A stretch of DNA of 64,000 nucleotides from Tetramitus jugosus (taxonomy: Eukaryota; Protista; Heterolobosea), in NCBI GenBank assembly GCA_937625935.1, contig OW569354.1:496001-560000 (forward strand), read 5' to 3'. How positions within the stretch are numbered: the stretch's first letter is position 1; every line of letters begins with the position of its first letter. This document shows positions 10,015 through 52,689 of the stretch, piece by piece. Below the pieces are notes generated by a model. The model worked only from the letters and a program-made list of their open reading frames with translations, did not search any database and was not told the origin of the DNA. The position numbers and the translations under genes are program-made.

Positions 10015-10800
10015 TCAAGTGACAGAGAAGCTCATATCCTGTCCATCCTTGTCTGTAAATGTTACGTAGTGTTGTCCACGATAGCATCTCTCATCAGTCA
10101 ATAGCGTCAAGTTGCCATCTCCCAGTAGTTGAGTGTCCACAATCAAGCTTCCACTGTAAGATCCAGTAGTTTTCAAAATGGCTCTAAGGCAGATGGATCT
10201 CTTGTTGAGGCCGTAGATAGTTCCGCGCATGGATGCTAAATCCACAGCCAACAGTTCAACTTCACTCGTCGTTCTCTGGTTGACCGAAAAGAATGCTTTT
10301 CCAAGCTTTTCCTCGGGGATTGAAAGGTCTTTGCATCATCCAAGTTGTTCATAATGAGAGTTGCAACTCTTTCCAGGTGATACGGATAGATTGAACGTAG
10401 TACTGTTCCCATGGATTGCTAATGTAACTAGGAGACGGATAGAGAACAAGTTTTGCCTGCACAGAAATGGCTTCCAATTGACAATTGTTTTCAGGCTGCA
10501 AATGATAACAACATGTTGACCAAAATCTTCGCTCTTCATAGTAGAGCTTCCATCACCATAGTCCACAACGTGAGTCCAAGTGCTCGTCGGTTCACTGACA
10601 TCAGTGCCTTTCTTAGCTCAAAGTCATGAGTCATGTTCGTTCATTCTAAATTGGCATTCTGGAGAACCAGAGTACATTCTTACCAGTTTTCAAAATGCGT
10701 TTCGTGAAGAACCTACCGTTACTATCTCGATCATCGTGGTAGATGAGCAGAGTGACTCCGTCGTGAATGGGCGCGAACAAAAGCTGCTGATTTCTGTCGC
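10015..10800 (-). pseudogene. Degraded coding-like sequence, fragmented by stops
   Basis: Consecutive minus-strand ORF pieces (10646-10831, 10336-10566, 10015-10251). The last two are in the same frame and separated by a single TGA. No recognisable family. Confidence 0.35.
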
Positions 10801-10814
10801 AAACAGATCGACTC

Positions 10815-11977
10815 TTTTTTTTTAAATACAACCATTTCGGTTGCTCTTTTTATTGTCTTGCTTATTCACTTGCCTACGCTCGAAGAGCGTAGGCCCTGGT
10901 TAGTTACCAGTTGGTAGGCAATGATTCTCGGAGAGCGTCATTGCCGTTGATTACATTTATCCTTCGTTGTAGTGAACAGGTGGTGGAGAGTCTTAAGACT
11001 TCTCCTCTTGACACTATTCACATATGTTTTGGCTTTCTTCTGTGCCAGTGGCTTCTTCATTCCTCCAGACATAAGACCCTCAGCGACCTCCATGATGGCG
11101 TCCGTTTCTATACCCATCATTCCTTGTAGCAGTTCACGGCTAGACTTTTTGATTGGTTGCCTCACAACCTTTCCTTCCTTCAGTCGCACCTCATCAAACC
11201 AAACATCGGCGTAGGCAGAGTCCGGGATTCCCATATTCTTGAGCTCATGCCCCGCTTTCACAGCCAATTGCCTTCTAATCATAATGGGACACCTGATCAA
11301 ACAATGTAGCACACTTTCGGGCTCACTCTGACACCAGCTGCACATGATCTGTTCCTCACCAGTGTTGTATAGATATCGTACAACTTCTGCTGTGTGGAGT
11401 GTTCCACTGCGTACCTGTGCATGAAACCATTCCAGCTTCCTGTCTATACCATGGGGGTATTTGAGGAAGCTAAAATCTGCACCACTGTTATTTGCTGCCC
11501 TCTGTAGCCAACATCGCTCGTCTTCATCAATTCTTGCACTTCTTTCTTGATCAAACAGCGACTGTAGATGCGATCTACTTTCCACATGCAGATTTCCTTT
11601 GCACAAGTCCGGTTCTGCACCTTCGATGGACCTCTTCCCTTCGCATCCACACCCACTCATTTGGGATATTAACACTTTCAGCACCTCAAACGACATTGCT
11701 CCGACCTTGCAGGAGGGAAAAATATGTTTAAATTCCTTCAGACACAGTGGGTGATCGTCCACCATTAGTTGCTCACAGCTTGTGATACCTGCCTTGTAGA
11801 GCTTCTTGAGAATTTCACTTGGTACATACCTGGCCAACCAACAACTATCACAGTAGGGATTAGTTTTGGTGACACGTATTTCATGTTTGTGCATTCTGCA
11901 TGCACACCACTTGAGGTAGGAGTGCTTGACAAATTCAAGCCTGTTTCTTGACTGGAATACATTCTCATTTTGGAATG
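10815..11977 (-). mobile_element. 5'-truncated non-LTR (L1/Tx1-like) retrotransposon upstream of a 5S gene
   Basis: Poly(T) at 10815-10823 is the poly(A) tail. Exact 16-bp TSD GCAAACAGATCGACTC at 10799-10814 and 11978-11993. The ORF carries the post-RT LYKAGITSCEQL motif and a zf-RVT-type CSWC...ESVLHCLIRCP knuckle. Confidence 0.92.
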
Positions 11978-12028
11978 GCAAACAGATCGACTCGAAAGGC
12001 GGAAATAGGGCAATAATTTAAGTAAAGT

Positions 12029-12147
12029 GTCTACGTTCATACAATGGTGGAACCACCTCTTCCCATTTCGAATAGAGAAGTTAAGCACCATCTGGCTGAG
12101 TTAGTATTGAGATAGGAGACTACTCGAGAACCCTCAGTAATGTAGGC
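12029..12147 (+). rRNA. 5S rRNA gene
   Basis: 119 nt. Terminal helix GTCTAC/GTAGGC, A-box-like AGTTAAGCA, GTTAGTA loop E, C-box-like GATAGGAGAC, and a TTTT Pol III terminator. Confidence 0.93.
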
Positions 12148-12484
12148 TTTTACCTCTTAACTAACAAAGAAAGCTCCAACACAAATCACAGAAACAAGAC
12201 CCATGGATGACGGATTTTCTTATTTTCCGTGTAATCCAAATAGAGGCTAGCCATTCACAGACATCTATCCATTTGGTGTCAGTCCGCAGAGAAATCTCTT
12301 CAGCTGTCCAACATTCATGCCCCGTGTGGTAATTCTCTCCAAGTTGATTTGGACGTGTAACAGTAACACCAACGAATTTTTGTCTCCTGGGCGACTGAAA
12401 CGTGGTGTGACACCCACAAGAAAACAATCCCATCAACAGCTCGCTCTTCCATACTCAAACCAAAAGTGTCACTCTTTCGAAATT

Positions 12485-14398
12485 ATGCCACAATTAACCA
12501 AAGAGGAGATCTTTAAATTGTTCGAATTTGATTTCTTGAATGTGACTGAACATCCGGATTGCTTTCAATTATTCCTGGCACATGCAAAAACAGAGCTCAA
12601 CTCTGAAGCACTCTACCTGTACATTCATCTCGAACTCCTGTTGACAAGGACAGGCAAGCACGAGAACATTTATCGAAAGCTGGTCTCACTCACTGAGAGT
12701 CACAATGTCACGCGGGCACTTAAGTCTGAGCAAACAAGAACCCTGAATTTTCAATTGAAAAAGTGGAACGATTACAATCTTGACACTGAGCACAATAACT
12801 CGTATGTGAGTAACATGGCAACAAATGGTGATTTGTTATCTGATGCTCCATCGATGCAAACAATGACAACTGCAACAACAACGAATACGGCTGCTACTAC
12901 GATCGCATCCAATGTGTTTTCTCACCTCTTTTTCAGGAGAAGGTCCAGCTTGAGTGGTAAGGCACTAGGGAGTGATGCGACGTACGAAGATTTGAATCAA
13001 ACAGTTTTTGTGCGATTGGTTGACTTGTACGCCAAATGCAAGGCCTTACGAAAATTATTCTATGGAACGAACAGCAAGTATCAAGTCAATGTGAGTAATG
13101 CAGTGTTGAACAATGTGGAGGATAGCTGGAGGGAGTTTAAGGAAATGTATATGACTGTGATACCTCAATTGTTTACGAACAGGCAACAACAGGTGGAGAT
13201 GACGAAGAGGGATGAAGAGAGGTCAGAGAAACATAACAATCATGACGCTGATGATGACGAGTCATTGGCAAGTGAATTGGATAGGAGTGAGTGTGAGACA
13301 GAAGATGAATTGTACAATGATGAGGAGATGGACACCCTCGAGGGAGAAGAGAGACAAGCCGCTCGCAGTAATTTGGAGTCAATAATGAATAATGCAGAGA
13401 AGTTAGTCGAGTCCATGTTTGGTTCTTCTCGTCTCGTTCTCATGCTCACACTATCCTCTGATATCTTCCCTCGATTCAAGAGATCAAAGAATTGGATTCG
13501 ATTCATCAGTACTCGATCGCTGGACGAGCTCAAGAAGTTTGGTACGAGTAAATCCAGTCTTCAGATCGAACCGTTGTTACTCACACCTCATGATCTCACT
13601 AGGGCCACGATCAATGCCAAGGATGTGGAGTTGGCAAAGGTATTGCTGAGAGATTACTATCATTGGAAGCCGATCACGCAAAAGAAACTATCTGTTTACT
13701 ATTCGAATTTTAAGGTGATGACAGATGAGGCGATTGAACAGTGTGGTTTCTTGCATGCGTTTAGATTGACATACGAGTTTGACAAGAGTGCTCTAGATAT
13801 GGCTCGAATGTTCATTTCAAAAAAGTATTACACAGCGCTGTCCCATTGGAAAGATATGCAATCGATTAGTTATGTTCCCTTGCAGTACAAGGTTGATGAG
13901 GCAACCGGGAAGCGAACCATTGAAAATTATGGAACATCTATTCTCTATTATCGAAAGAGAATGATTGTCTTCAAGAGAGAGTTTATTCAAGCTCACACAC
14001 TGATTCACGATGAAGAAACAGGCACTTATCTCGATGTTTTCAAGGTTTGTGATCACATAAACGCACCTGAAAGCAAGAAGGGCTATAAACGAGCCCTTTC
14101 CTATGGTGTTGCAGCGTTCACAGAGATGGGAGACAAGTGTCGATACACTTCAGTCTTCATGGTCAACCTGAGAGGTCACCTGGAAACAAAATCAGAAAGT
14201 CCAACTCTTGTTGAGAGACAGTCCATAAAAGCACACACACGACAAGCTGTGAAGAACATGCAAAGTTTTGCGGACGAAGCAAGCTTGTCCAATTTTGAAT
14301 TGGATGATGATTTGAAAATTCTCAGGACCCTGCGGGAGCACCAGGAGTACAATAAGATGGAGAGAACATCAAGAAATATCTCACAGACACCGTCGTAG
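12485..14398 (+). CDS. RGS-domain plus START-like domain protein
   Basis: N-terminal F..FLAHAKTELNSEALYL, YQVNVS and LSSDIFPRFKRSKNW form a split RGS domain. The C-terminal KREFI...GYKRA...CRYT..FMVNLRG is START-like. Probable start ATG at 12485. Confidence 0.75.
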   Translation: MPQLTKEEIFKLFEFDFLNVTEHPDCFQLFLAHAKTELNSEALYLYIHLELLLTRTGKHENIYRKLVSLTESHNVTRALKSEQTRTLNFQLKKWNDYNLDTEHNNSYVSNMATNGDLLSDAPSMQTMTTATTTNTAATTIASNVFSHLFFRRRSSLSGKALGSDATYEDLNQTVFVRLVDLYAKCKALRKLFYGTNSKYQVNVSNAVLNNVEDSWREFKEMYMTVIPQLFTNRQQQVEMTKRDEERSEKHNNHDADDDESLASELDRSECETEDELYNDEEMDTLEGEERQAARSNLESIMNNAEKLVESMFGSSRLVLMLTLSSDIFPRFKRSKNWIRFISTRSLDELKKFGTSKSSLQIEPLLLTPHDLTRATINAKDVELAKVLLRDYYHWKPITQKKLSVYYSNFKVMTDEAIEQCGFLHAFRLTYEFDKSALDMARMFISKKYYTALSHWKDMQSISYVPLQYKVDEATGKRTIENYGTSILYYRKRMIVFKREFIQAHTLIHDEETGTYLDVFKVCDHINAPESKKGYKRALSYGVAAFTEMGDKCRYTSVFMVNLRGHLETKSESPTLVERQSIKAHTRQAVKNMQSFADEASLSNFELDDDLKILRTLREHQEYNKMERTSRNISQTPS

Positions 14399-14713
14399 AT
14401 GGATGAAGAATAAAGATATGATGAGTGACACTGAGATTCTGGTAAATCATACACTCCTTCATTTGGGAAAAAACAAGACGCGGTCAATTATTTGCAGGAA
14501 GCAACAAAAAAAGCGACAAGAAAGAAATGATGGCTGACGCAAACATTTATGAGCTTGTCCTTCAGGTTGCAAGAGAATCCGATTGGACAAGTGCCAAAAC
14601 ACTCATCCTCCCCAACAGCGAGTATCATCAGATGAACTCAATGATGACCAGTCAATTTCACACTCAATAAAACAAGCGTTTTTTGTTTCAAAGAGTACGC
14701 TTTATTGTTTCTC

Positions 14714-17194
14714 TTACAATTTGTCCAAGTACATCATCGCTGTAGGGATCTCAGGTTTGAGTCCTTTGCGAACACGGATTTCAGTTGCGATCTTATGTGC
14801 AATAGTGTCCTTCTCGTATGGATTCGAGTTCATTGTTCTCCAATGATCGAATGAACACTGAGGGAATGCTTGTCCAGATGTAGCAGCTCTCAATTCCTCT
14901 GTCAAACCAAAACTCTCAAGGACTGGAATATGACATATGACAGTGTACAACGTACCCACAGTTTGTTCTGTGGCCAATATCATTCCCTTTCTCTTATTCA
15001 CTACATTGTAAATTCCACCGAGAGCATTGTCAACAGTTTGGATTTCAACTTTGTACATTGGTTCAACTAATCGAGGTTGAGCTGAGAGTTGACTCGAGTA
15101 GTAGGCTTTTCTTGCTGCTGGTATCAATTGGCCACCACCTCTGTGAATAGCATCAGCATGCAGAACAGCGTCTATGACATTGAATCGTACTCCTCTCATA
15201 CTCTCCTCACAAAGACCACCTTCCTTTGAAGCCCATTGGAAACTTGAAACAACACTTTCTTTGATTTCGTTCATGAAGTCAGTGGACTTAGTACAATCCA
15301 CTACCACATTAGGTCCACAGTCAGCAGGTCCAAAACACCAAATCTTCTTTGCTGAGTTAGCATCCCAACCTTGGTAAGTGTCCACAATGTGTTTTGAAAG
15401 AGTCTTGGAATCCATTAGTGATGGGTTAAGAATGTTATTCTCCAAGTCAAGACTCATCTGCTCATCAATAGGAAGAGCTTGCATATAGAGTCTGTTGTGC
15501 TTGTTTGCAGATTTTGATAGGCAGATATCAGACATTTGAGTTACCGTTTCCTTGAAAGTGACCACTGGCTTTGATTTCAATAGTTTGATGCCTTTGCAGT
15601 ACTGATTCTCAAGATCTCCAAAACAAATATCCAGATGAAGTTCTCCAGCTCCAGCCATAATATGCTGACCTGTCTCTGATATCGTACATTGAAGCAGCGG
15701 ATCACTCTTGGTTAGTTTCTTCAGGCCTTCGACCAACTTGCCAATGTCAGAAGCCTTTTCTGTTTCTACAGCAATTTGAACGACAGGACTCACAGAGTAT
15801 TTCATATTCTTGAATGGGTGAGCGTCAGTGCATTCGAGATCAGTTACAGTACCAGTTTTGACGATCGCATTATCCAATCCCACCATACCAATACAGTTAC
15901 CGCATTGAGTTTCATCTACAGATCTAGTGACTCTTCCCATCATAACAAGAAGTCTTTGAACGCTTCCCTTGTAAACATCAGCTTTTGATTGTGTTGTTGC
16001 CTCATATTGAGGACCCATGATTCTTACTTTGTGACCCTGTTTAAGGGTGCCACTGAAGACTCTTCCAAATGCAACGAATTTACCTCCAGAACCTTCTGAA
16101 GGAACCATCTTTGAAACATAGACCATCAGAGGTCCATTTTCATCACAATCTCTAATTGCAGTAGCATACTTGTCATCTGTCGGGCCTGTATACAACAATG
16201 AATATCTGTACTTTTGGGCAGTTTTTGGTGAAGGTAATCGATCAACAATAAGTTCGATTAGAGCTTCGTGGGCTGGAAGAAACTTTTGCATTACATTTTT
16301 CATCAATTCCTTTGAAGTAGCTTCTCTTTCTTGAGTTGTCAGGCGAACATCCAGAGCCGACAACATTGAATCGAGTTGGATCAGATCATTGTCATTGACA
16401 ACTTTAAACAGATTGAAGATTGGTTCCAACACGAATTGACAGAAACCTCGTTTGAGAGTCTTCCCTGTCTTTTTGGAAATTCTATCTTTCTGCCACTTAT
16501 TCGAATCGGGACAGAAGAACCAATCACCCCAGAGTTTCTTCAGAACTTTGTCTTCAGCAATCTTGAATTTTGAAGCATACATCTTTGCGAATCTTCTCAG
16601 AGTGAATGCCCAACCCATTTTACCAGCTCCTATTGCAACATTGCCTTTCACAGGACTCACCTCGAAGCTATAACCAAGTGAGTGGTCAGTGTAGGTGGAG
16701 ATGATCACATTGACACTTTCGACAATTCTTAGAAGGTTCTGATAGCACTCCTCAGGATCTAATTGAAGTTCAACAATTGCACGATCAAGCTTGTTGATCA
16801 TTAACACTGGCACAATTCTTTCTTGGAGTGCCTGTCTTAGAACAGTTTCAGTCTGAGAACGACATCCCTCGACTGAGTCAACAACGACCATGGCTCCGTC
16901 AGTTACTCGAAGCGCGGCAGTCACTTCAGAAGAGAAATCAACATGACCAGGAGAATCAATGAGATTAATTAAGTACTCTTGTTCCTTGTACGGAAACATG
17001 AGAGAGATGGCTGTGGACTTGATCGTAATGCCCTTTTCGATCTCATCTGGACGAGTGTCCATGTACCTCTTGTTGCCAATGGCAGAGTGGGAGATGATAC
17101 CTGCAGCTCCAACGAGAGAATCAGTCAGGGTACTCTTGCCGTGATCCACATGGGCGATCACAGAAATATTTCGGATGTTTGTGCTTGATGTCAT
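14714..17194 (-). CDS. EEF2: Eukaryotic elongation factor 2 (divergent, intronless paralogue)
   Basis: NIRNISVIAHVDHGKSTLTDSL, GITIKST, LIDSPGHVDFSSEVTAALRVTDGA, NKLD, the diphthamide loop LHADAIHRGGGQ and C-terminal YLDKL. Confidence 0.95.
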   Translation of the reverse strand: MTSSTNIRNISVIAHVDHGKSTLTDSLVGAAGIISHSAIGNKRYMDTRPDEIEKGITIKSTAISLMFPYKEQEYLINLIDSPGHVDFSSEVTAALRVTDGAMVVVDSVEGCRSQTETVLRQALQERIVPVLMINKLDRAIVELQLDPEECYQNLLRIVESVNVIISTYTDHSLGYSFEVSPVKGNVAIGAGKMGWAFTLRRFAKMYASKFKIAEDKVLKKLWGDWFFCPDSNKWQKDRISKKTGKTLKRGFCQFVLEPIFNLFKVVNDNDLIQLDSMLSALDVRLTTQEREATSKELMKNVMQKFLPAHEALIELIVDRLPSPKTAQKYRYSLLYTGPTDDKYATAIRDCDENGPLMVYVSKMVPSEGSGGKFVAFGRVFSGTLKQGHKVRIMGPQYEATTQSKADVYKGSVQRLLVMMGRVTRSVDETQCGNCIGMVGLDNAIVKTGTVTDLECTDAHPFKNMKYSVSPVVQIAVETEKASDIGKLVEGLKKLTKSDPLLQCTISETGQHIMAGAGELHLDICFGDLENQYCKGIKLLKSKPVVTFKETVTQMSDICLSKSANKHNRLYMQALPIDEQMSLDLENNILNPSLMDSKTLSKHIVDTYQGWDANSAKKIWCFGPADCGPNVVVDCTKSTDFMNEIKESVVSSFQWASKEGGLCEESMRGVRFNVIDAVLHADAIHRGGGQLIPAARKAYYSSQLSAQPRLVEPMYKVEIQTVDNALGGIYNVVNKRKGMILATEQTVGTLYTVICHIPVLESFGLTEELRAATSGQAFPQCSFDHWRTMNSNPYEKDTIAHKIATEIRVRKGLKPEIPTAMMYLDKL

Positions 17195-17461
17195 GGTTCT
17201 ACTATCGGAAGGAGTGTTTTAGTCAGAGTATCTTTTAGATTCAGTTATGTTATTGTTTGTTCTTACTTTAACTCTGCTTTTCAAGATCCGCATTTTATAG
17301 CTGGTTAAGTCGGATTACTCCTACTGGTAGGTGCACATGGGAATTTGCACTCTCACCAAATATGGCAAATTATCTTCTGCAAGGGCGAAATTGCACTCAA
17401 CAGTGCAACGACAAAATTGCAGTCACACCAATCGGGGAAGCAAGAGAACACAAAACCAAAA

Positions 17462-17580
17462 GCCTACATTACTGAGGGTTCTCGAGTAGTCTCCTATCTC
17501 AATACTAACTCAGCCAGATGGTGCTTAACTTCTCTATTCGAAATGGGAAGAGGTGGTTCCACCATTGTATGAACGTAGAC
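17462..17580 (-). rRNA. 5S rRNA gene
   Basis: Reverse complement matches the 12029-12147 copy, with a T-run terminator and the same conserved 5' flank. Confidence 0.93.
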
Positions 17581-17631
17581 ACTTTACTTGAATTATTGCC
17601 CTATTTCCGCCTTTTTCTGAGCGGAATCTGA

Positions 17632-18341
17632 ATTTGGCCTTCACTGTCTTCCCAGAGCTCTGTTAAGAGTCGAAGATTGCTTGCAATGACAGTAGTAGAC
17701 GAGTTAGTGGAGCTAGGAGTGGCACGAAAGAGTTTTATCGACATCTGGTTTGACAATTTGCGACTGAGGGAAGGCAAATTGTCGCGAAGACCTATCAAGA
17801 AAACCAGCAAGAATATCTTCAAGGAATGATGGGCATCGAGGTAGATACCATCGAGCAGGTAACAGATAGATTGGTGCTTAACGGGATGAAGAAGTCAGTA
17901 GCCGCAAAGAAAGCCAAAACATTCGTGAACAGTGTGAAGCGGAGATGTCTCACAACCCTCCATCAACTGTTCACCTCAACCAAAGAGAAACAGAAGCAAT
18001 GACGAGCTGTATGTACCATTCTCAAGAAGCTCTACAAAGGTATCACAAACCGCGCGAAACTAATGGTTGACGATCACCCTCTGTGTCTAAAGGAGTTCGA
18101 ATACATCTTTCCGCCTGCAAGGTCGGAACAAGGTCGTTTATGGTGCTGAAGGTGTTAGTATCCCAGATGAGTGGGTGTGGATGTGCCGAAAGGAAAAAAG
18201 AGGTCAGTCGAAAGTGCAGAACCGAACGAGGGTAAGTTCGGGCGTCATTGCCTACCAACCGGTAACTAACCACGAAGAGCGTAGGCACGTGAAAGAGCAA
18301 GACAATAAAAAGAGCAACCGAAATGGTTGTATTTAAAAAAA
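17632..18341 (+). mobile_element. Degenerate, internally rearranged 5'-truncated copy of the same non-LTR element, upstream of a 5S gene
   Basis: Encodes IDIWFDNLRLREGK...QGMMGIE...KKAKTFVNSVKRR, homologous to the 10938-11981 ORF. Same 3' end (GCAACCGAAATGGTTGTATTT plus A-run). Degenerate TSD CTGAGCGGAATCTGA (17617-17631) versus CAGAGCTGAATCATGA (18342-18357). Confidence 0.88.
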
Positions 18342-20542
18342 CAGAGCTGAATCATGACAGTGCTTCCATGAGCAGCGATTTATTTCACATTTACTTTCGT
18401 ATTTGTTCCCGATTCATGGCGAGATTGATGATTCCTATTCATCATTGATATACTTGCTACTGGTGCACCGTGGAGTTAGTGCTTACTACTATCGAAGCCA
18501 AGTAGCGTCCACAAAGAAGTACCAGAAAGATTTTCAACTTTTTCTGGCCCAAGGACTGGAAACTACGAATGTTGAAAGAGGGATGTTATGCGTTCGTATC
18601 CTTGGCAAGTTATGCTCTTCTATATTCGCTGAAATATTTGAAGCACTCAAACCGTTTTTGTGGAATGTGGTTTTGAAATTTACCGATTCTGATGAGTTAA
18701 GTGAAAGTTAAGTGTTGATTGTGGAGTATCAGGCTAAGAGCGCTTTTGAAAAGATGTTTCTATAGCACAATCTATAGTACAGCTCCTGTTCGATCTTGCT
18801 TTTGAGTTCACAGAAAGATCTGAATTGACATTTAGCGAGGAGTTGGCTCACTTGATCCACGATGGAAGTGCCAAGATAGAGTCTAATAAGTTGTCATTGT
18901 ATTTGAGATCACTGACGACCACGTTGGAAAACCTAGCGGTAACCATTCTATCTAATCATCGTAATCACGAAGCAAGAGACAAACTAAGCGGTGCACTACA
19001 TTCAATTGAATTCGTCCCAGCGAACGCCGAATTGATTGACAATGGTGTTGTGCATAGATTGTATAGTACAGTATATAGTTGTCCATCTATTGAGGTGGAC
19101 ATAATCATATTTCCTTGCTGGACTCTCTATCTCGACTTTATTCGAAACAATCTTCTTGTTGGTGTGGAGGAAGCTCACAAATTGTCACCTTCAAATCACA
19201 TGAGTTTATTTCATTACACGATTTCATTGGTATGCAGGGGATTTAACGCTCAGAACTGACCACATTTCATCATTCGATGATGGATCGCTCATTTTTGAAT
19301 GAGCTGTCTGAGAGTGCAGTGTGTGAGAAGCATCAATAGATTCTTCAACCACTGGTCGCTCGTTTGATGGTGGCAACAAAATCAGCCGCCGAGTGATTGG
19401 GACACAAGGGTGCAATAGAGTGGGCAGATACTCCTCATTCATCACATGGCTGACTCCACATGACAACATCAATCATGAAACATTCGGTACAGTCAATGTC
19501 TGATTCTTCTGTTTCTTCCTTGCCAAGAACGGTCGTGATGTTCATATCTACACAGCATACCATTTGAGGTAGGTGCAGTTGGCTCAAACATATTTGTTGG
19601 TTGGGAAATTCTCTCTCTTGTTGGAAAGCTATAAGTCCCATTAACCGTTCCATCTCAAAGGAGTAGAACAGGGTTGCGATTACCCAAATACCCCTTCAGC
19701 AAGGGCAACAAGATAAAAATCTATCACCATTGTCTTTTCTGAGAGCTCGAATATCACGCAAAAGTTGCTGCTTGGTTCCCCTGGAGTTCTCAACCGACCA
19801 ACTGCCCCCTGGAGTTTTCAACAATACCAATATGTTGGATCTGATGAAGAAAGAGGATCCATGAGGGCCATTATTGGTATCACTCACAAAATGAGATAGT
19901 TTGAAATGAGAGATGTGAGACTGGTGGTGTCTCATGTGAATTACATTGCTGCATTCTCTGCTGTTGCTCTATGGAAACATGATTGGCCACCACGTGTTGT
20001 ACAATATTGGTCAATTTTCAATCGACTGCCGCTGCAAAGGATAATTAAGTACTTGAACAAAACTGGTAGTCCATGAAAAATAATGCTCATGTTTTGATCC
20101 TTTCGCTGCTCTGTTGAATAAAGTGCATAACATTTCTTTTTTTGGAGATGATCCGGGTTGTATTCCCCAATGAATCTTTCGAAACAATCAACGATCATTA
20201 TTTTGATTTAATAAGTGCAGTAATCATTTTCAATCCATGGGGCAAGAGGACCCCATGACGACACTCTGCAGCGCGATTTCTATGTACGGCTGTCTCCCCA
20301 TTTGTATAAATTATTGCAATGAACGGGACCTCGACGCGATCATTTTCTAAAAGAGATAGGCCTCGCTTCTTCTAGGTCAGAATGAGATGTTCTAGCAGAC
20401 CCCTTAGTCTTGTCACATGTTCTGAGTTATACCGTTAATCACCTGATCCAATAACCAGAAGCCTCTCAAAGAATAGTCTACAGCAGTACAAACACATCTA
20501 AACCAACATAACAACAATAATCCAGTTCGGTTAGGTATTATC

Positions 20543-34586: not shown

Positions 34587-34699
34587 GTCTACGTTCATAC
34601 AATGGTGGATCTTCCCATTTCGAATAGAGAAGTTAAGCACCATCTGGCTGAGTTAGTATTGAGATAGGAGACTACTCGAGAACCCTCAGTAATGTAGGC
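34587..34699 (+). rRNA. 5S rRNA variant or pseudogene (6-nt deletion)
   Basis: Matches the other two copies except for loss of ACCACC (GGTGGA^TCTTCCC). Keeps the conserved 5' flank and TTTT terminator. Confidence 0.9.
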
Positions 34700-34793
34700 T
34701 TTTGCTTCCGCTTCTCCGTGTTATTGCATGCTCTGACCCTGTAGTTTCTTTGTAGTTAATGCTTGTTCCCTCCGTTTCCCATTGAAAAAATAA

Positions 34794-37706
34794 TTAATTG
34801 AAGATTGATTTTACAGACATAAGTTCGGACTGAAGCAGTGGGAGCTTGTTCTTCTTGAACCTCAGAAATTCTCTTGCATCCTCTTCCAGAACAGCTAGTC
34901 TTGTCTTCAAGATGACATTGTTGGGCTCTCGCTCAAGACTTTGTCGAATTCGTTTTCGTTCTTCTAATTCTCGCATGTACTTTGGCTCCATTGTGCCAAA
35001 GAATGTCATCAGTTCTGATGTGAGATACTTGACTCGCGATACGGAATCTAATTGATTTAGGTTCTTGTTTGGAGAAGTGTTTGGTGGCATCATGGTCGGT
35101 TCAGACTTATCATTGTGTTGTTCATTGTCGAGTAATAGCTCAATCGGTCGTCTGGGTGGTGGTCTTTTCCATTCGATAGTAGAAAGGAAGAAAGGAGAGC
35201 TGGTGGATGGAGCTGTTACAATTGAACGAACCAAGTTAATTCTCTTCTTTTCTTGTTTCTTTAACAGGTGGAACTTCCAAGTTGAAAAGTACCGAACAAT
35301 GATACTAACAGACTCCATCGATATTGGCATTTCTCGTTGGACTTGATGTTTCACGTGGTTGTCGTACCTTTCAACTCCACGCATAAGGAACTGTCTTAAT
35401 GCTCGCTCCAACAAAATTCTCTTGTGTTTCTCCAGGGCTTGCAATGTCAGTTCTCCTTTCTCTTTCCTCATCTGAGAGAAGAGTTTGAAGCAACGAGCAA
35501 CCTTTTGGAAAGTTTTTCTTGAAAAGAAGATATCAGCTCTCCGTTTCGAGTTCAACTCTATATATCTTTCTTGCAACCTCTGCCTCCATAGTCGGAGGAT
35601 CTTCTGACGCAAAACACTACAATAACACGTAGTCGCTTCTTCTGATCGAGAATTCTTCCCTTTTCGAATCGACAAGTAAATACCCCATGCTTTCAAACAC
35701 CTCTTCAACAAATTCTTAACGAAGCTACTGTGAGCCCTTTTGTTCTCCAAATTCGATAGAATTCTAGAATGATAATATTGTTTCATGGAAGAGAATATTC
35801 TTTGCAGTCTTTTTCGATTCAAGGGTTGTTGAATCAACTTCACTCTTTCTAACATTAATTCTTCCTTCTCTTTTTGTTTGTGAGCATATAGACTTAGCGA
35901 CTGCATTACCTTTCTCTTTAAATGAGCCGAGTGAAACTGTTCTGCTTTTCGATACCACACACTCAACTCCATGTTTGAGTTGTATTCAGATATCCAATGG
36001 CGGAAATATGTGCGATAACATAGTTGTGAATAGAATGTTTGAGCAGTCTCCTCATCGAGTTGATTGGCGTCTCGAATTGTTTGTTCTCTCTTCCAGTAAT
36101 TAAAGTATCTATTCTTGACAAAGAACGAGTAAATATTCGTTGATTTGTTGATTTCATCTAACTTAATCTGTCTATGTTTTTGATACAACGTGAATGCCTT
36201 CAATGCTCGAAACATCAATCGGAAGGCATTAAAGCGGAGTGCTGATTGATGCTTCTGAAGATCCACGACATTTTTCTGTGTTTCCATCCACCAAATTTGA
36301 AAGAAATACCGTTTAGTGTTGAACAGATACAACCGAGTTGCTTCGAGTTCATACGCTCTCTTTCTATTAAACCTAACAAGCTCGCATAACCACACGTTGA
36401 AGTATCGAGCAATGAGATTTCGATTCGATAAAGCGATGACTTTTTGATGAGTAGTTTTCTGCTTAACTCTCTCATCTCGATACAATTTGAGAGCCTCAAA
36501 GTATTGGGAAGCGTAACGAAGCAAATAATGTCGATCCGCTTCTCTGATGAGAGCTTTACTGTGTCTATTGCTATCTACATAATAGAGTATGGAGTGAAAA
36601 GTTTTTCTGACCAATGTAGTATCATAGTGTTCTATTGCGAGCTTAACTTGTTTCAATTCTCGTTTTTCGATCTTCAATTTCGCTTTGATTGCCCATATTT
36701 GAAAGTATTTTCTCTTTGAACTGAACAGGTCATACTTTTTCGATTGTAATCTCTGATTTCGTCTCCTCCTATGAAGATCTCTATTCATCTTGAATGATTG
36801 CAATCCAACTTTCTTCAGGACAAACTCGCGGTACTTTTCGGATTGCTCCCATAGGGTTCGTTGTCGATTCAACCACCTCCAATACCGAAAATATTTCAGG
36901 ATTAATTGAGAGATAAAGTGGTGGTCTGCCAGTTGATTCAAATCTCTTTTCCATCTCGTATGCCGAGCATGACACGTTAAAGCTATTATTGCTCTGCTCA
37001 TTACATTCATGTTTGCTCGTTTAGCTGCTTCTTCAAGTTTCACATCTTCTTGACAACGTAAGTCATACAGTTTCGTCCTCCACTTGTAAAAGAATTGTTG
37101 CAAGATACTCAATTTCGATCTTGCTCCTAGTATGAATTCTTTTTTCCAAATTTCCATTCGGTCCTCCTTTTTCTTCTTCCATTGCTTGAACACTAACCTA
37201 TACAAGCGTCGGTTATAGGATTGATCTGCTTTGTTGGTTCGTTCTTCTTGTTTTTTCCTCACGTGCTCCTTCCATTTAATCACTGCTTTTGTGGCTATTT
37301 CATTGGATTTTCTGCTTCTCAATCTATTAAACAAAACTTGTTCCTTCTTGAATAATTCTGAAAATTGAGAATCTTCAGTTGGTTCGATCGATCTGTCAAG
37401 GGCATGACTAGAAATTTGTGGAGGGGATTTTTCCAATCCTTTCTTCACATTTCTGATCCTTTCTAATCTAGAGGGGATATTCGAGCTGGGTTGGTCCGAT
37501 ATCGTTGCTTGATTTGTTGGTTTCGGTATCTTGATGCCAGTCGACGGTTGAGGAGCAGCTCTAACCGATCGAGGAGTGGGAAACTCTGCCGTTTGAAGGT
37601 TCGATGCACGTTGTGCTATCCCTTGCTTCTTTGTTGCCGTTGTCGAGAGAGGAGGGTTTGATTTAATATTTCTTGTCAATTTCTGATTATTGAGTCGGGG
37701 ATGCAT
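34794..37706 (-). CDS. SFI1: Sfi1-like centrin-binding repeat protein
   Basis: Many repeats of A..(F/H/Y)...LL...F..W(K/R) over 970 aa. Confidence 0.8.
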   Translation of the reverse strand: MHPRLNNQKLTRNIKSNPPLSTTATKKQGIAQRASNLQTAEFPTPRSVRAAPQPSTGIKIPKPTNQATISDQPSSNIPSRLERIRNVKKGLEKSPPQISSHALDRSIEPTEDSQFSELFKKEQVLFNRLRSRKSNEIATKAVIKWKEHVRKKQEERTNKADQSYNRRLYRLVFKQWKKKKEDRMEIWKKEFILGARSKLSILQQFFYKWRTKLYDLRCQEDVKLEEAAKRANMNVMSRAIIALTCHARHTRWKRDLNQLADHHFISQLILKYFRYWRWLNRQRTLWEQSEKYREFVLKKVGLQSFKMNRDLHRRRRNQRLQSKKYDLFSSKRKYFQIWAIKAKLKIEKRELKQVKLAIEHYDTTLVRKTFHSILYYVDSNRHSKALIREADRHYLLRYASQYFEALKLYRDERVKQKTTHQKVIALSNRNLIARYFNVWLCELVRFNRKRAYELEATRLYLFNTKRYFFQIWWMETQKNVVDLQKHQSALRFNAFRLMFRALKAFTLYQKHRQIKLDEINKSTNIYSFFVKNRYFNYWKREQTIRDANQLDEETAQTFYSQLCYRTYFRHWISEYNSNMELSVWYRKAEQFHSAHLKRKVMQSLSLYAHKQKEKEELMLERVKLIQQPLNRKRLQRIFSSMKQYYHSRILSNLENKRAHSSFVKNLLKRCLKAWGIYLSIRKGKNSRSEEATTCYCSVLRQKILRLWRQRLQERYIELNSKRRADIFFSRKTFQKVARCFKLFSQMRKEKGELTLQALEKHKRILLERALRQFLMRGVERYDNHVKHQVQREMPISMESVSIIVRYFSTWKFHLLKKQEKKRINLVRSIVTAPSTSSPFFLSTIEWKRPPPRRPIELLLDNEQHNDKSEPTMMPPNTSPNKNLNQLDSVSRVKYLTSELMTFFGTMEPKYMRELEERKRIRQSLEREPNNVILKTRLAVLEEDAREFLRFKKNKLPLLQSELMSVKSIFN

Positions 37707-42255: not shown

Positions 42256-42337
42256 AAATTCAGACCACACAAACTTACCAATACCTGACCTATTTAATAT
42301 CTAATACACAGCTGCAAAACCAACTGACAAAACATCG

Positions 42338-42410
42338 TGGAGGCGCCGGGAATCGAACCCAGGACCTCTTCCATGCTAAGGAAGCGCTCTACCAACTGAG
42401 CCACGCCCCC
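42338..42410 (-). tRNA. tRNA-Ala (AGC)
   Basis: GGGGGCG acceptor stem with G3:U70, anticodon arm CTTCC-TTAGCAT-GGAAG, and GGTTCGATT T-loop. Confidence 0.95.
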
Positions 42411-43981: not shown

Positions 43982-43996
43982 TAAACACCAAAGATT

Positions 43997-46324: not shown

Positions 46325-46539
46325 TGTTTCACTGACCAATAAAATGGTGAATTGAAGTTATTTGTTCGTTGCGCTGTTGCCCAAAAAAATTGATTGTTGG
46401 AGAGCAAATGTGAAAACAATAAAACATGTCATTCGATTTGATCTCACAAAGTTTTGTTTGGCATGTATTCACCATGAAATCAACCAACAAGTTGCTCAGA
46501 TACTCGTTACATCCAACATGCTTGCAATTTTATTGGCTC

Positions 46540-46923
46540 TCAACAGGTCAACACACACAAACCTGGTTGCAAATGTTCATTCACATGAATTGATTGCTGA
46601 TTGCATCTTTCCACTTGAATACAATCAATTAACAAAGATATTTGTTGAGGTGTTTGTTTGATCCTGTCCAGATGTTGGCCTCCTCTGCTCTTGATTGATT
46701 TTATGGATTGGAACCACACACTGAAATTTCTAAGTTGTTTAATGCAATCGTCTTTTCCTTCAACAATAAATACTGTATCATTCAAAATTGCATGCAGCAC
46801 CAGCATAATACTTTCAATCGAGCTCACGTCTGATGAGTATGCCTTCTTCACTTTTTCATACATTCTTGTTAGAATACCGAGCAATTTTTCTATTGTTATT
46901 GTAGTATTATTTCGAGTAGACAT
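46540..46923 (-). CDS. Hypothetical helical protein, possibly a pseudogene fragment
   Basis: 127-aa ORF with ATG start in AT-rich sequence. Confidence 0.35.
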   Translation of the reverse strand: MSTRNNTTITIEKLLGILTRMYEKVKKAYSSDVSSIESIMLVLHAILNDTVFIVEGKDDCIKQLRNFSVWFQSIKSIKSRGGQHLDRIKQTPQQISLLIDCIQVERCNQQSIHVNEHLQPGLCVLTC

Positions 46924-47124
46924 AATAACTCTTTATCACATTCGAAGAATATGGGAATGAAGAAAAAGTGTAAGATGTTTAAGAATTGGAGCTCGATAGA
47001 TTAGAATAACCTAAAATTTGAATGAATCCGAAGTTCATCAGACACTGGATCTTCAATACTTGCTGTCATTAGTGAGCAAACATGAGAAGAGTAACCTCAA
47101 TGGGAGAAACTTCAATAATACTGA

Positions 47125-47317
47125 GGGAGCGTCCAGATATTATTTCTTACGCCCCCCTAGGGAGGGGGTATGAGAAATTTATTCAAATAGTTATTCATAT
47201 CCCAATCCTAGTAGGAGAATTAATGTAACGTTCGAATTTACAGGAAAATGTGTTATTCAAATTTATTCAAAACAGGCAGGGAGGGGTCAGATGTGAACAT
47301 AATATCTGGACGCTCCC
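47125..47317. mobile_element. MITE (PIF/Harbinger-like), copy 1
   Basis: Perfect 19-bp TIR GGGAGCGTCCAGATATTAT, 3-bp TSD TGA on both sides, 193 bp. Confidence 0.9.
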
Positions 47318-49485
47318 TGAGAAAGAGTGTTTAACATACAAAGTCATATATCAAAGTGGTCACCTTTTTCATCAACAATAAATAGTTTCATAGAATGCGA
47401 TTGTAAATTTGAATATTATCGATTGACCAATGAAAAATGGATACAAACACTTTAATCCATATAACATTAACAAAATAATCTAATAAAATATCACCAAAAC
47501 CCCTGGACAAACAAGATGAATTGCCAGGAAAGGGATGTAGACCATTATCTTCATCATCACCTATAGATATATAATTGGACCCAATTGCGAAGTCAGTAGT
47601 TTAATTTACGAATTAAAAAAGGAAATGTTAAGAAATGTTTCGTTGTTGTGGAAGCAGTTCGGAGGGGAAGCGTTTCATTGCTTGACCAGCATCCTTCCCA
47701 ATCTGTTCACCTTGAGTATCCATCCATCAGTCCAATCAGTGAACTCAGAGGAATATTTGAAATAGGGTGAATACATGTGTTCACTACTCATGCCACTTGG
47801 AAGATTGAACATCGATCAATGGATTACTGTCTTCAACCAACAATTTTAAAGTTGTAAGGATGAAAGAATAGCACATATCGAGGCAGATTCAACCCTCACT
47901 TCATGTTCATTCCCAGGAAGCCTCATCACTTTTTTAAAGGAATTAGGAGTGAAAACTGAGTTGACAAATTTTTTCACTCCAAATCCGGTGATGGCAAAAA
48001 TGATTTAATCTTTCCTCATCTCGTGTCTTTCGTACTGCAACAAACAACAATAATAATAATGTCGAAAAATAAAATAAAAACAAGAGAGCTTCAACAACCC
48101 AATCATCTCAAGATTCAAAGAAGAAGAGAGGTCCTAATCATACAAATTTGGAATCAAAGAAATTTGGAACTTGATCTTCCAGAAAGAGAGGCCTCAGATT
48201 ACAAGAAAAAGATTTCCGATTCATTTTCTTTGTGGAGACGCGAATTATCGATTGGTCTTGATGATCTCGAATGTGGTGATGATGTTGTATTGATGATTAA
48301 CAATAAGGCCGTTGGTATTGCCTCTCTTAACTGGTTTGGTGTTGACTCCAACAGTATTACAAGTTTTGCAGTCATATTAACCAACTTGTTACTGGAATGT
48401 CTCTTGGTAATCCTGGAACCAAAAGGAGATGGCAGAGCTTGATATATCAAGAGGTTCTAAGGTCTGTCCAAGATGCTATCATCGAGATCAAAGGAGGTGT
48501 TAGCGAAAACGAAAAGATGGTGTTTGTTTCCCTTCCCCTGAAATGTATTCGTAGAAGGTGATCCTGTCCTAAAATCGAATTTTGAATGATTTGGAACGAT
48601 TTACAACAAAAAACAACAAACAGAAAGAAAATCGCAACGCAACCTGATTATGATAGGGAAATATCTTCAATGGACAACGTAATACGTTAATTATTCCATA
48701 CGATGCCATGTCATGAACAAGTTTATTATGAGATAGACGACTTGTTTTCACTCGTAGCTTATAAGAATAAATTATAAGCAAATAGGTTTTCAATGACTGT
48801 TTTTAACGGATTTCTACCTTTTATTGAAAGCAATATCATCTGGATACAATTCTCTTTGGTATACATATACGGCAATACTACTTTCTTCCAGTAATAACCT
48901 TTGAATCCTTTATCTAGGGTATTATACTCATCAGAATCAAGATTCTCCCAAACGAAATTCTCTGGAAGTGCAACCAAGGGAGAGTCCGTCTTACTTCCAA
49001 TATACGTATCTGGTAAAGAATGTATAACCATTAGCACGAACACAAGTTTGGTAAATGTATAGTCACACTTCTTTCCAGAAGACAAACTCTTTTCAATTAA
49101 CTTCACAATCTCTTACTAACAGGTTGTTCAACCCCTACTTTTATATGAATTTGTTTTTAATTAACTCCCAGACTCTTTAATACTCCGGGGAGGTAAACAG
49201 ACGACATTCTGCATATTCATCATACTTTCGTCTCTTACTGCTGGGGTGTGGTTTGAACCCGGGCCTTTTCGTTCATTATTGATTGTTTCATTTTGTTTGT
49301 TCTTTGAATTCATGAACTTCTGAACAGCATTACCATCACTGAATGAAGCTATTATCTCACATATATCCTTCCTATATAGATTGCAACGAGCTCCTTCAAC
49401 TTGGATATAACAAACTTTGCTGGGAGTGTAGCGTTAACCTCATTCTGATGAAATTCACACCGCGGAGGATCCAAGAAACAAAAGT

Positions 49486-49567
49486 CGCCCACTGTAGGAT
49501 TCGAACCTACGCGGGATGAACCCAACGCATTAGCAGTGCGCCGCCTTAACCACTCGGCCAAATGAGC
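49486..49567 (-). tRNA. tRNA-Ser (GCT)
   Basis: 82 nt: GCTCATT/AGTGGGC acceptor stem, TGGCCGAGTGG A-box, GCGCA-CTGCTAA-TGCGT anticodon arm, long variable arm, GGTTCGAATCC. Confidence 0.95.
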
Positions 49568-49623
49568 TTGATATTTCGTTACATGGTAGATATACCAAAA
49601 CTGCTATTTTGAACTGAGGTTGC

Positions 49624-51010
49624 AACGCCGATGAAAAAACGAACACACACCCCTGTTGTTCGCGAGTATGAGAATCCACGCTATGCTGTGTGGACCACAG
49701 CACCAAGAGGAACTGCTCCAAGCAGCAAGGAGGTCATCATCACTGGAAAGTGTGATGACTCTCCCAAGGCTGCCTTGGCCAAGAAGATTGGCTTGGATTT
49801 TGGTGATTTGCTCACCAGGGTCCAAGTCATCAAGAAGGGCCCCAAGAGGTTTGTTGCGTGGGTAACTGTTGTTGATGACAACATTTACCCATTTGTTGAA
49901 TCCTTCAACCGCAACAAGAAGATGAGTGGCTGCAAGGCAGCACTCAAGCACAACGTAGATTGTGCCAAGAAGGTCGTCCTCCACGGAGTTAAAGGTAAGA
50001 CTGAGGACGACATCAAGGCCATGCTTGGCACAACAAAGGTCAAGAACGTGCTCAAGAAGCACGACACCTCCTTTGTTGTGATGGAGTCCGAAACGTATGC
50101 CGAAGCTTTGCTTCGGAACGTTCAATCCATGCCAGTGGAGGTGGAAGCAAAACGCTTCCTTCCACGCCCACGTGATCCGGTCAAGGCTGTCAGCAAGAGG
50201 CTGACCAAGATGTACCAAGAGCTCCTGGCTGTGGTGGACGACCTGCGCCACCAAGTCAGTGTGTTAAAAGATATGGCTTCCGTCAACCGGATTCCCCTCG
50301 CATCCCCGTCTCCAAGGACGCCGGAGCGAATCTCCGAATTCGAACCTTCGACTCCGTCTACGACCGATGACTGGGAGTCGATCTTGCCGGAGTCCCATCC
50401 CGCCACTCCAACTACGGTCACCCAAGAGCCAACCAACAACACCATTGATGAGGATGCTCGTAACAGAGCAATCCTCGAGCTAGTATTGAACACCTCCGAG
50501 GTGTTCAAGAAAGTCAAGAAAGAGATTGCTGCCCGAGCAATCATGGTGGACCGTGCAAGAAGCACAACCACCGAAGAAGATCCAGTTGAGTTGGATCTCA
50601 GTAACCCTGACTGTGAGTTACAGAGTCCCCAACTCAACGAACACAAGAAGCGATCAGCACGTGTCACCGTTGGTGACACTGCTGCCAACAAGATCCCGGC
50701 CAGGTTGGCCAGTATCAAGTCAGGTGCTCTCCGTAGGTCCTACCAACTGGCTAGGACTACGGAGCCATCTGATCTCACCAGTGGTGCTCCAGATGGTAGT
50801 GGAGGCCCTCGCAACGAATCCCTGAAGAAGGGATCAAAACAACATTCCAAGAAGAGAATGAATCCTGTTGCGTAGGCCTGCCACTCCACTGGGCAAGCAC
50901 CACATCATGTTAGACAATTGAGAGCAGGCAAGCCTGCTCTCACGCAAAAGAAAAATAAAAGTTCCGCAACGTGGTGCGTGAGCACCATTTGTTGTATTAA
51001 AAAAAAAAAA
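49624..51010 (+). mobile_element. ORF1-only non-autonomous retroelement nested upstream of tRNA-Ser
   Basis: Exact 15-bp TSD TTGAACTGAGGTTGC at 49609-49623 and 51011-51025, A12 tail, one ORF and no RT. Confidence 0.9.
49631..50875 (+). CDS. Putative retrotransposon ORF1 (gag-like) protein
   Basis: 414 aa, higher GC than the flanks. The basic N-terminal alpha/beta region is RRM-like (KVVLHGV...TEDDIKAML...FVVME...A.ALL), followed by a coiled coil and a Pro/Ser/Thr-rich linker. It lies inside a TSD-flanked poly(A) element. Confidence 0.7.
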   Translation: MKKRTHTPVVREYENPRYAVWTTAPRGTAPSSKEVIITGKCDDSPKAALAKKIGLDFGDLLTRVQVIKKGPKRFVAWVTVVDDNIYPFVESFNRNKKMSGCKAALKHNVDCAKKVVLHGVKGKTEDDIKAMLGTTKVKNVLKKHDTSFVVMESETYAEALLRNVQSMPVEVEAKRFLPRPRDPVKAVSKRLTKMYQELLAVVDDLRHQVSVLKDMASVNRIPLASPSPRTPERISEFEPSTPSTTDDWESILPESHPATPTTVTQEPTNNTIDEDARNRAILELVLNTSEVFKKVKKEIAARAIMVDRARSTTTEEDPVELDLSNPDCELQSPQLNEHKKRSARVTVGDTAANKIPARLASIKSGALRRSYQLARTTEPSDLTSGAPDGSGGPRNESLKKGSKQHSKKRMNPVA

Positions 51011-52689
51011 TTGAACTGAGGTTGCCTGATTCTGCCAAAATTGTACTCTGGTTTGACGGTGCGATATATGAAAAGGGCAAGATTATGCCACGAAATGTCA
51101 AGCGATCACCAGAAGGACTGTTGGAGGGACTAATGGGCAAAGAGGGAGGTTTTAGGAAAGAGCTACTGGACTCAATGATGCTCTCCGGCAGGAAACAAAA
51201 GGAGGCAGAGAAAGTAATAAGAGGTATGGTGGACTCCATGAAGAGGGCCTGTCAAAGCACTTCACAAGGTATATATTAACTCCGTCGTGAAGAGGAGTGA
51301 AACACTGCTCAGCACCTGACGGTGCTGAGCGGAATCATGACTCTGCAGCGGTGTATTGAATAAAGAGGCAACAATTGTTGTATGGAAAAAAAAAACTGCT
51401 ATTTTGCAAAAAACAAAGGCGTACGATGGTGCACCAGAACATGCATCTTTCTTCAACATGTGCACTCTGGATAATTTACGCTCTCTCGTGCTAATTGACA
51501 AGTTACGTATTATTGATGATGCATTTTCAGTGTACCGTATGTCAGATAGCACTCTGAGCGAATTAGAAATGGTATTTCGTGCTGTAGTATCGATTGGTAC
51601 TTCGAAGTGTGAAATTCAGTATTGCTAGTGTTTGGGATGATATCAATAGGGACAGTGAAAACCTAGTTTATATATTATTTGTGATTATATACCTACACAT
51701 ACAATAGCAATAGGGATCACGCAGAGATGAGTCTATCAGATTTCGGGTTACAGCATTTAACCGCTATTAGCGACGCTCCTCATAATATTGCTGGATCAGA
51801 CGATCAGGTACAATGTTATTATTTCAGAGTTATCTAGTGCTGGTTGATCGGTATGATGATATTATTCGTGCTCACAGATCTGCTATGAATCATAGTGATC
51901 GGCCGAGAAGTATTTTTTGGGGCGACCGAAATAGAAATAGGGCCTCCAGTTGAATTACCGAGCCAGAGTATAGATTTTGTGAGTTCATCTGAAGATTTAC
52001 CTCTGCATGATATATTACCAGCGAATGATGTTGATGGTGACATGATTATGCAAGACACTCTGACACAGACAGCAGAGACATCTCAACTGAGTGCAACAGA
52101 TGCATCTGAATAAACAGATTTGAGAGCTAAGCATGGTTTGACAGGGGATGTGACATCTGATCTGTATATTCCACTCCGATCAATGCTTGCAAGAATCTGG
52201 GATGCAGAGACAGAAGAAAATAACATCACCGGCTGCAACAAAGAGGAGAGCCCCTGAATCAATTGTAACTCCCACTACTAAGAATAGGCGATCTTCCAGA
52301 TGGAACTGGAGCATGAAAATGTGAATCTTCTTGCAAGAAACCTTTGCCATCTAGGATCAAAGGAGAAGCCTCTAGCTTATTGCTCACAAATGTTCCAGGA
52401 AAGCAGATAAGTTGTTGTCAGCTCAACATAGCGAGTTACAGATCAATACTAGTGTATCAGTCACTCACAACAAGATCCTTGTTGCAACAGGGACGATCAC
52501 AGCAAGTATTGGAAGCTGAGTTACAAGAAGGTACAATACAAACAGATTGCAAAATACACGTATGTTGCAAAAAGTATTTCAACCATCTTCTATTTATGCC
52601 ACAATTGGTTCAGACAAAAGGGCTTCTTCGGATTAAATATTTAGATGAAGTTCACTTTGTTTCGAAAGATTTAGAGAAATAAGGGATTT

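Follow-up and report, generated by a model that had tools for sequence, protein, structure and literature searches.

A family of retrotransposons without long terminal repeats (LTRs) very probably homes to the upstream side of genes that RNA polymerase III (Pol III) transcribes in a 26.35 Mb protist genome assembly (GCA_937625935.1, 56 contigs). We describe the family from a 64,000-nucleotide stretch of this assembly, positions 496001-560000 of contig C11 (G000:C11:496001-560000, hereafter the window), in which all four poly(A)-tailed elements lie head-to-head with a 5S ribosomal RNA (rRNA) or transfer RNA (tRNA) gene, the 5′ end of the element facing the gene. The best explanation overall, which we hold with high confidence, is that these are long interspersed nuclear elements (LINEs) that use target-primed reverse transcription to insert before Pol III genes, at one set position and in one set orientation.

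Insertions in the window

Pol III genes were located with Rfam and ARAGORN, giving six genes in the window:
12029-12148, plus strand: 5S rRNA gene, target of element 1 (Rfam, 100.4 bits)
17461-17580, minus strand: 5S rRNA gene, target of element 2 (Rfam, 100.4 bits)
34587-34700, plus strand: third 5S rRNA gene, 114 nt, unoccupied, upstream motif kept (Rfam, 73.8 bits)
42337-42410, minus strand: tRNA-Ala(AGC) gene, unoccupied potential target (ARAGORN)
49486-49567, minus strand: tRNA-Ser(GCT) gene, hit by two nested insertions (Rfam and ARAGORN)
55445-55518, minus strand: tRNA-Phe(GAA) gene, unoccupied potential target (ARAGORN)

The third 5S gene could be a variant copy or one in decay. The elements were delimited by their open reading frames (ORF1 and ORF2), 3′ untranslated regions (UTRs), poly(A) tails and target-site duplications (TSDs):
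10815-11977, minus strand: element 1, a 5′-truncated LINE (ORF2 C-terminus, 3′ UTR hairpins, poly(A) tail)
10799-10814, no strand: 16 bp TSD of element 1 on the poly(A) side, identical to 11978-11993
11978-11993, no strand: TSD of element 1 on the 5′ junction side, its gene-proximal edge 35 nt from the 5S start
17632-18341, plus strand: element 2, an old, rearranged, 5′-truncated copy (junction reading, ORF2 tblastn)
49613 to 51395 (bulk 51026-51395), plus strand: outer, older, 5′-truncated element at tRNA-Ser (ORF2 C-terminus, 3′ UTR, poly(A))
49625-51010, plus strand: inner, younger, ORF1-only element of 1.39 kb (ORF1 at 49631-50875, 414 aa; 3′ UTR hairpins, poly(A))
47650-47799, minus strand: orphan ORF2-derived fragment of 150 bp, tail-less and away from the upstream side of any Pol III gene

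An earlier note on this DNA had placed every poly(A)-tailed element of the window head-to-head with a Pol III gene, and our coordinates for all four agree with it to within 1 nt. The 5′ junctions lie 51 nt (element 1), 51 nt (element 2), 44-45 nt (outer element) and 56-57 nt (inner element) from the mature 5′ end of the gene, as the note had reported, and it was also right that the TSDs differ in sequence between elements and that one is degenerate, their lengths in the window being ~11-16 bp. The chance of finding four of four elements so close to genes is ~4 × 10−12, taking six genes with a 30-nt zone each in one orientation, or 180 of 128,000 position-orientations.

Element 1 carries a poly(T) at 10815-10823 and an open frame at 10938-11981 that encodes the ORF2 C-terminus; it is 98% identical to a full-length copy of the family at locus L035 (97% at the protein level over the C-terminal piece of ORF2), and its 3′ UTR folds with z = −4.7. 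Element 2 has the degenerate TSD (17617-17631 versus 18342-18357, 13 of 16 positions matching, one indel) and runs from an ORF2 C-terminus of a diverged subfamily through an internal ORF2 segment to the 3′ UTR and a short poly(A). The internal segment corresponds to positions 4297-4503 of the full-length element and is wedged between the ORF2 stop codon and the 3′ UTR, an arrangement that could reflect template switching in reverse transcription or two overlapping insertions. At tRNA-Ser, the outer element has a TSD of ~11-14 bp (49599-49612 and 51393-51406) and its first 12 nt, 49613-49624, now lie within the TSD of the inner element, which is 14-15 bp long (49610-49624 and 51011-51025). The inner element is non-autonomous. 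Elements 1, 2 and the outer element share homologous ORF2 C-termini, a homology proposed in the earlier note and recovered here by tblastn.

Compared with 60-odd loci of the same genome, the only repeated parts of the window are the Pol III genes, the four elements and the fragment at 47650-47799; the flanks beyond the TSDs are unique sequence, and the window therefore gives no sign of segmental duplication. The shared flanks that the earlier note had named as a mark of such duplication are thus missing, and the TSDs differ. That duplication, or transport of the Pol III gene inside the element, might account for the pattern is scarcely credible: the two targeted 5S genes of the window do share ~40 nt of upstream sequence, but this stretch is a motif found at 5S genes genome-wide, at least ten tRNA species are targeted, and the TSDs lie between gene and element, which puts the gene outside the insertion. 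We rejected both possibilities on the unique flanks, the differing TSDs and the position of a TSD between gene and element.

Genome-wide pattern and a second genome

Searching the assembly with element 1 gave 49 scored matches, from which 30 loci were cut out, and in ~20 of these 30 a tRNA or 5S gene stands head-to-head with the copy. The tRNA targets belong to at least ten species (Ser, Asp, Thr, Phe, Asn, Glu, Trp, Lys, Tyr and Arg). At clean junctions the gap between the gene and the 5′ end of the element is 49-51 nt for 5S genes and 44-56 nt for tRNA genes. The TSDs there measure 12-16 bp, no two being alike. The loci without a visible gene hold stacks of fragments in the same orientation, or copies that run past the fetched flank.

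We also sampled from the side of the target, taking 30 5S loci in contig order regardless of elements. An antisense element fragment lies upstream of 14-15 of these 30 genes, and at none of the 30 loci can a tail-to-head fragment be assigned to the local 5S gene itself. The earlier note had seen 5S genes as a main target; the occupancy of about half of the sampled genes supports this, though as a discovery it is less new, TRE5-A of Dictyostelium also hitting 5S (PMC5391098). Independent coordinate lists, with 47 entries for 5S genes, 53 for nuclear tRNA genes and 158 for element matches, were then cross-matched for pairs up to 3 kb apart. Upstream and antisense pairs make up 23 of the 27 found (16 of 16 at tRNA genes), for a binomial p of ~10−10 against an expectation of 0.25. 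Two fragments on contig C7, which make up one of the three exceptional loci, are explained by a second 5S gene that faces the element (L026).

Such a pattern might be left behind if elements inserted at random and purifying selection spared only the Pol III-proximal copies, since in a compact, gene-dense genome insertions elsewhere would often be harmful. Selection, however, cannot yield a window of ~6 nt or the strict orientation seen at tRNA genes, nor can it place young copies, 98-100% identical, exactly between a gene and its older copies, and we consider this origin very improbable.

The closest relatives in the databases come from environmental assemblies and from a second genome, GCA_037189345.1 (ORF2 59% and ORF1 63% identical). 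On contig L068 of the latter, a tRNA-Val gene has an ORF1-only element 55-56 nt upstream, flanked by a 14-bp TSD of its own, and a 5′-truncated, autonomous, older copy lies behind this element. The same geometry in this genome makes the targeting a property of the family rather than an accident of one assembly. On the same contig (L068:2348-2624), 80 nt separate a 5S gene from the tRNA-Val gene, both of which point the same way, and the stack of elements is upstream of tRNA-Val. Relatives with ~25% identity, on environmental contigs of 7-13 kb (L070-L072), have no tRNA genes near them and several carry an RNase H; in these relatives there is no sign of the targeting habit beyond the family and its 59%-identity sister.

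Several observations weigh against targeted integration upstream of Pol III genes as a general rule for the family. Two 5S-adjacent matches, C11:363481 and C20:342391, are on the downstream side of the gene listed, the copy at L007 has a gap of 28 nt and no TSD, and the gap at L020 is only 39 nt. The orphan fragment at 47650-47799, which belongs to a diverged subfamily (88% identity with L008:2308-2464), lies off Pol III genes altogether. The distance at tRNA genes is 3-5 nt longer than at 5S genes, about the length of the tRNA leader, a difference that rests on few sites. Neither of the two U6 genes in the incomplete lists has an element nearby, although a sample of two is uninformative. Finally, no intact autonomous master copy was seen, the full-length copy at L035 being frameshifted in both ORFs.

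Mechanism of integration and the targeting cue

The geometry of the copies shows that the nick falls on the Pol III gene's sense strand. This nick, which is the gene-proximal edge of the TSD, lies upstream of the gene by 34-36 nt at 5S genes and mostly by 38-42 nt at tRNA genes (30-42 nt overall), and it is from this sense-strand nick that the poly(A) RNA is copied. The second strand is cut 12-16 bp further upstream, which leaves the 5′ end of the element 44-57 nt from the gene in the head-to-head arrangement. A new insertion enters between the gene and the older copies and builds stacks of a single orientation; insertions into the heads of older elements at an unchanged distance from the gene are seen for the inner element of the window, at L035 and at L068.

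The TSDs share no sequence, and position rather than sequence thus defines the site. This had been proposed in the earlier note, and the preservation of the geometry across the genome and in the related genome bears it out. A distance that stays fixed regardless of sequence, at two promoter types and in the heads of older elements, fits a protein tether at the start site better than recognition of DNA. The ribonucleoprotein would accordingly be expected to attach to a factor that type-1 (5S) and type-2 (tRNA) promoters have in common and that sits just upstream of the start, with TFIIIB, by analogy with the proposal for TRE5-A, as the likeliest candidate. ORF2p may recognise the 3′ hairpin and could mobilise ORF1-only RNAs in trans, ORF1p may act mostly in cis, and the outcome would be a safe harbour in a gene-dense genome.

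Upstream of the 5S genes, at about −36 to −20, lies a motif (roughly AAAACGYGGAAATAG) that is seen across 30 5S loci (L038-L067, at about 1465-1480). It is present in the window at 11994-12028 and 17581-17616, the nick adjoins its upstream edge, and it probably represents an upstream element of the promoter or one for TFIIIB. The proximity of this conserved motif to the nick, together with a short GATAT-like motif near tRNA genes, could be taken to mean that the endonuclease reads DNA sequence or shape upstream of the gene, a sequence-specific targeting as in Tx1-group elements. Against this, the TSDs and the surroundings of the nick have no consensus over more than 15 sites, the tRNA upstream regions are otherwise unrelated to one another and to the 5S upstream region yet give equal spacing, and new copies enter the 5′ ends of older elements (the inner element, L035, L068) without any change in the distance to the gene. 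We regard sequence reading as distinctly improbable.

A different cue at active Pol III genes, such as Pol III itself, TFIIIC, the −1 nucleosome or the edge of a nucleosome-free region, is unlikely, although a less strained alternative to TFIIIB. What is observed is geometry, it is alike at the two promoter types, and any factor common to both would fit; the binding of Ty1 integrase to the Pol III subunit AC40 is a precedent. The internal sites for TFIIIA and TFIIIC, however, differ between 5S and tRNA genes while the distance to the gene start is nearly equal, and the nick falls just upstream of the yeast TFIIIB footprint, which is given in PMC5391098 as −40 to +5 on 5S.

Anatomy of the element

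The full-length copy of the family spans L035:345-5653 (5.3 kb) and lies 53 nt from a tRNA-Thr gene. It has one frameshift in each ORF, with other copies open across the ORF2 site. In full-length copies the ORF1 ATG is ~6-9 nt from the 5′ end, the 5′ UTR being ~8-16 nt. ORF2 has ~1,270 codons and encodes, in order, an apurinic endonuclease-type domain (APE), a reverse transcriptase (RT) and a CCHC/zf-RVT-like region. The RT is well supported (RVT_1, E = 2.6 × 10−26, with a YVDD motif), the Exo_endo_phos match is weak (E = 1.4 × 10−3, below the Pfam cut-off), and a CX2CX8HX4C motif ~1,140 residues into the protein coincides with a weak zf-RVT match (E = 0.05-0.07). The best PDB match is human L1 ORF2p, residues 93-709 (RT and part of the endonuclease), E = 10−17, a match that says nothing on clade as L1 is the sole APE LINE with a solved structure. 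No RNase H was detected in Pfam scans of both pieces of ORF2, for the C-terminal piece up to E = 10. ORF2 ends in a ~110-aa C-terminal extension that is conserved among local subfamilies only 35% identical overall; this conservation refers to the local subfamilies alone and not to other LINE families. The C-terminal 347 aa gave no match in a sequence search of PDB and a predicted fold that is too poor to use (predicted local distance difference test, pLDDT, 48.8). In an exhaustive protein search, the named proteins nearest to ORF2 outside the family reach no more than 29% identity (Artemia, Cordylochernes, Closterium), the other matches being environmental relatives.

ORF1 has no match in Pfam, and its profile found nothing meaningful among PDB sequences; the ESM Atlas gave a weak RRM lead, which was later backed by the predicted fold. 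The first 215 residues are predicted (pLDDT 83) to form two RRM-like domains followed by a long helix, with PDB fold matches to the tandem-RRM proteins HuR, PABP and DND1 and to the RRM and coiled-coil proteins SFPQ and NONO. On this model, ORF1p is a predicted RNA-binding protein of tandem RRMs and a coiled coil.

The 3′ UTR is ~130 nt long. In all subfamilies, the ORF1-only element included, it consists of a 10-12 bp hairpin, an A-rich spacer (AAUAAA) and a terminal hairpin. The latter, CAAC(N)/(N)GTTG, is common to all subfamilies and is followed by TAT(T/G)n and poly(A). The hairpins fold with z from −3.9 to −6.2 and their loops vary. At L023 the terminal hairpin has changed from CAACC/GGTTG to CAACT/AGTTG, one fully compensatory pair change.

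Internal-deletion derivatives come in a second type besides the ORF1-only element: at L018:302-2207, an ORF1 (56% identical) is followed directly by the C-terminal third of ORF2.

Activity of the family

The family is apparently active. Copies of the main subfamily are 97-100% identical to one another, the ORF1-only element is present in the genome in at least 17 full-length, open-frame copies with 95-100% identity, and a second ORF1 subfamily (50% identity) has ~40 open copies. Contigs of an oligo-dT metatranscriptome cover the ORF1-only element of the window from 49624 to ~50990, with a 3′ bias and an empty left flank. In one RNA contig, a SMART-type template-switch oligo and 6-7 nt (GAGAAAA) are joined to the 5′ end of the element at 49624, which suggests that transcription of the ORF1-only element begins a few bases before its conserved 5′ end. 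Near-identical element contigs were found in groundwater, rhizosphere, soil and freshwater metagenomes. Among the metagenome and culture runs there were no empty-site alleles, the contigs showing only the element and other tRNA-Ser flanks.

Classification and relation to known systems

A poly(A) tail, varying 5′ truncation and TSDs of varying sequence identify the family as non-LTR, and the order APE-RT-CCHC in an ORF2 of ~1,270 aa, with RNase H absent, is that of the L1 clade. The family is an APE-type, L1-like LINE with several subfamilies and with ORF1-only and other deletion derivatives. In function, it belongs to the elements that insert within a narrow window at more than one type of Pol III promoter (tRNA and 5S), whatever the local sequence.

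The upstream side of Pol III genes, 5S and tRNA genes among them, is also targeted in yeast by Ty3 and Ty1 by way of the Pol III machinery. These are LTR retrotransposons with an integrase, they insert at other distances, and Ty1 lacks a strict orientation. Among L1-clade APE LINEs, the Tx1 group is reportedly tied to small-RNA genes as well, with Mutsu in 5S genes, Keno in U2 and Dewa in tRNA arrays (Kojima & Fujiwara 2004). Those elements enter the gene or repeat itself, at a defined sequence, whereas the present family inserts outside the gene, at a defined distance and with no target consensus.

TRE5-A/B/C of dictyostelids resemble the family in being poly(A) LINEs with an ORF1 and an APE-RT-Cys/His ORF2 (PMC5391098, PMC3159450, PMC5006619). 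They too lie head-to-head with tRNA genes, ~47-50 bp upstream and with the 5′ end towards the gene, and also upstream of 5S; their abundant, ORF1-bearing, non-autonomous derivative (TRE5-A.2) parallels our ORF1-only element, and both have a structured 3′ end, which is essential in TRE5. For TRE5-A.2, ORF2p works in trans, ORF1p has a cis preference and the 3′ structure is essential (PMC3159450), and the targeting contact of TRE5-A has been proposed to be ORF1p binding to TBP (PMC5391098). The two differ in that the present family lacks the modular A/B (5′) and B/C (3′) UTRs of TRE5, having the very short 5′ UTR described above, and in its host, which is not a dictyostelid and builds a flagellum. 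TRE5-A keeps 35-42 bp to the Dictyostelium 5S gene, on its upstream side, and 47 bp to tRNA genes (PMC5391098), whereas the distance at 5S genes in the present family (49-51 nt) is close to that at tRNA genes. The 5S gene of Dictyostelium lies on the ribosomal DNA palindrome (PMC5391098), in contrast to the 5S genes here, which are dispersed on chromosomes and about half occupied. We therefore call the family TRE5-like in behaviour, set apart from TRE5 on the strength of its UTRs and its host. A further non-TRE LINE, NLTR-B of Polysphondylium (Heterostelium) pallidum, inserts 39-64 bp upstream of tRNA genes (PMC5006619). NLTR-A and NLTR-B have an RNase H after the RT, where none is detectable in our family, and NLTR-B has 3 copies as against hundreds of matches for the present family.

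Homing of LINEs to the upstream side of Pol III genes has been called unique to dictyostelids and its origin unknown (PMC5006619), and a full-text literature search found no such elements described outside dictyostelids and yeasts. The family would thus be a second large, apparently active system of LINEs until now described only in dictyostelids, in an unrelated, flagellate soil protist, and either a convergent solution to life in a compact genome or a pointer to the missing ancestry of the TRE elements. Although the mechanism itself is not new, the family rests on good evidence and should interest transposon biologists. With dispersed 5S genes and near-equal distances at 5S and tRNA genes, the genome is a natural setting in which to ask what component of the Pol III machinery the elements read, and position- and orientation-specific integration by a LINE has practical interest for safe-harbour insertion tools.

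A broader scenario is possible, although we consider it less likely than not. Tethering to the Pol III pre-initiation complex would have arisen separately in a lineage of flagellates, probably Heterolobosea/Discoba, that is remote from Amoebozoa and fungi, type-1 and type-2 promoters being treated alike; the family's own transcription may depend on its position before a Pol III gene, because its 5′ UTR is almost absent; and the ~110-aa extension of ORF2p would be a candidate tether alongside ORF1p.

Host genome

The host has genes for a pair of radial-spoke proteins (349 and 276 bits) and for IFT57 (311 bits) and therefore builds a motile flagellum. Dictyostelids are not known to have one, and the host is therefore not a dictyostelid. 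This was the view taken in the earlier note, and at least 47 5S genes dispersed on chromosomes and the affinities of elongation factor 2 (EF2) point the same way. The genome has a GC content of ~41%. EF2, encoded in the window at 14714-17194 on the minus strand, is unusually divergent, with at most 71% identity to any database protein; its best named matches (54-57%) are to Acrasis, Willaertia, Anaeramoeba and Stygiella (heterolobosean, Anaeramoeba and jakobid), which is compatible with a heterolobosean affiliation of the host.

Elsewhere in the window, the minus strand at 34794-37706 carries a 970-aa ORF with no Pfam match that, by language-model features, resembles Sfi1 centrin-binding proteins (score 0.91). 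Contigs C54 and C56 have identical tRNA coordinates (941, 12773, 14364, 14438 and 44585) and are probably an organelle genome assembled twice.

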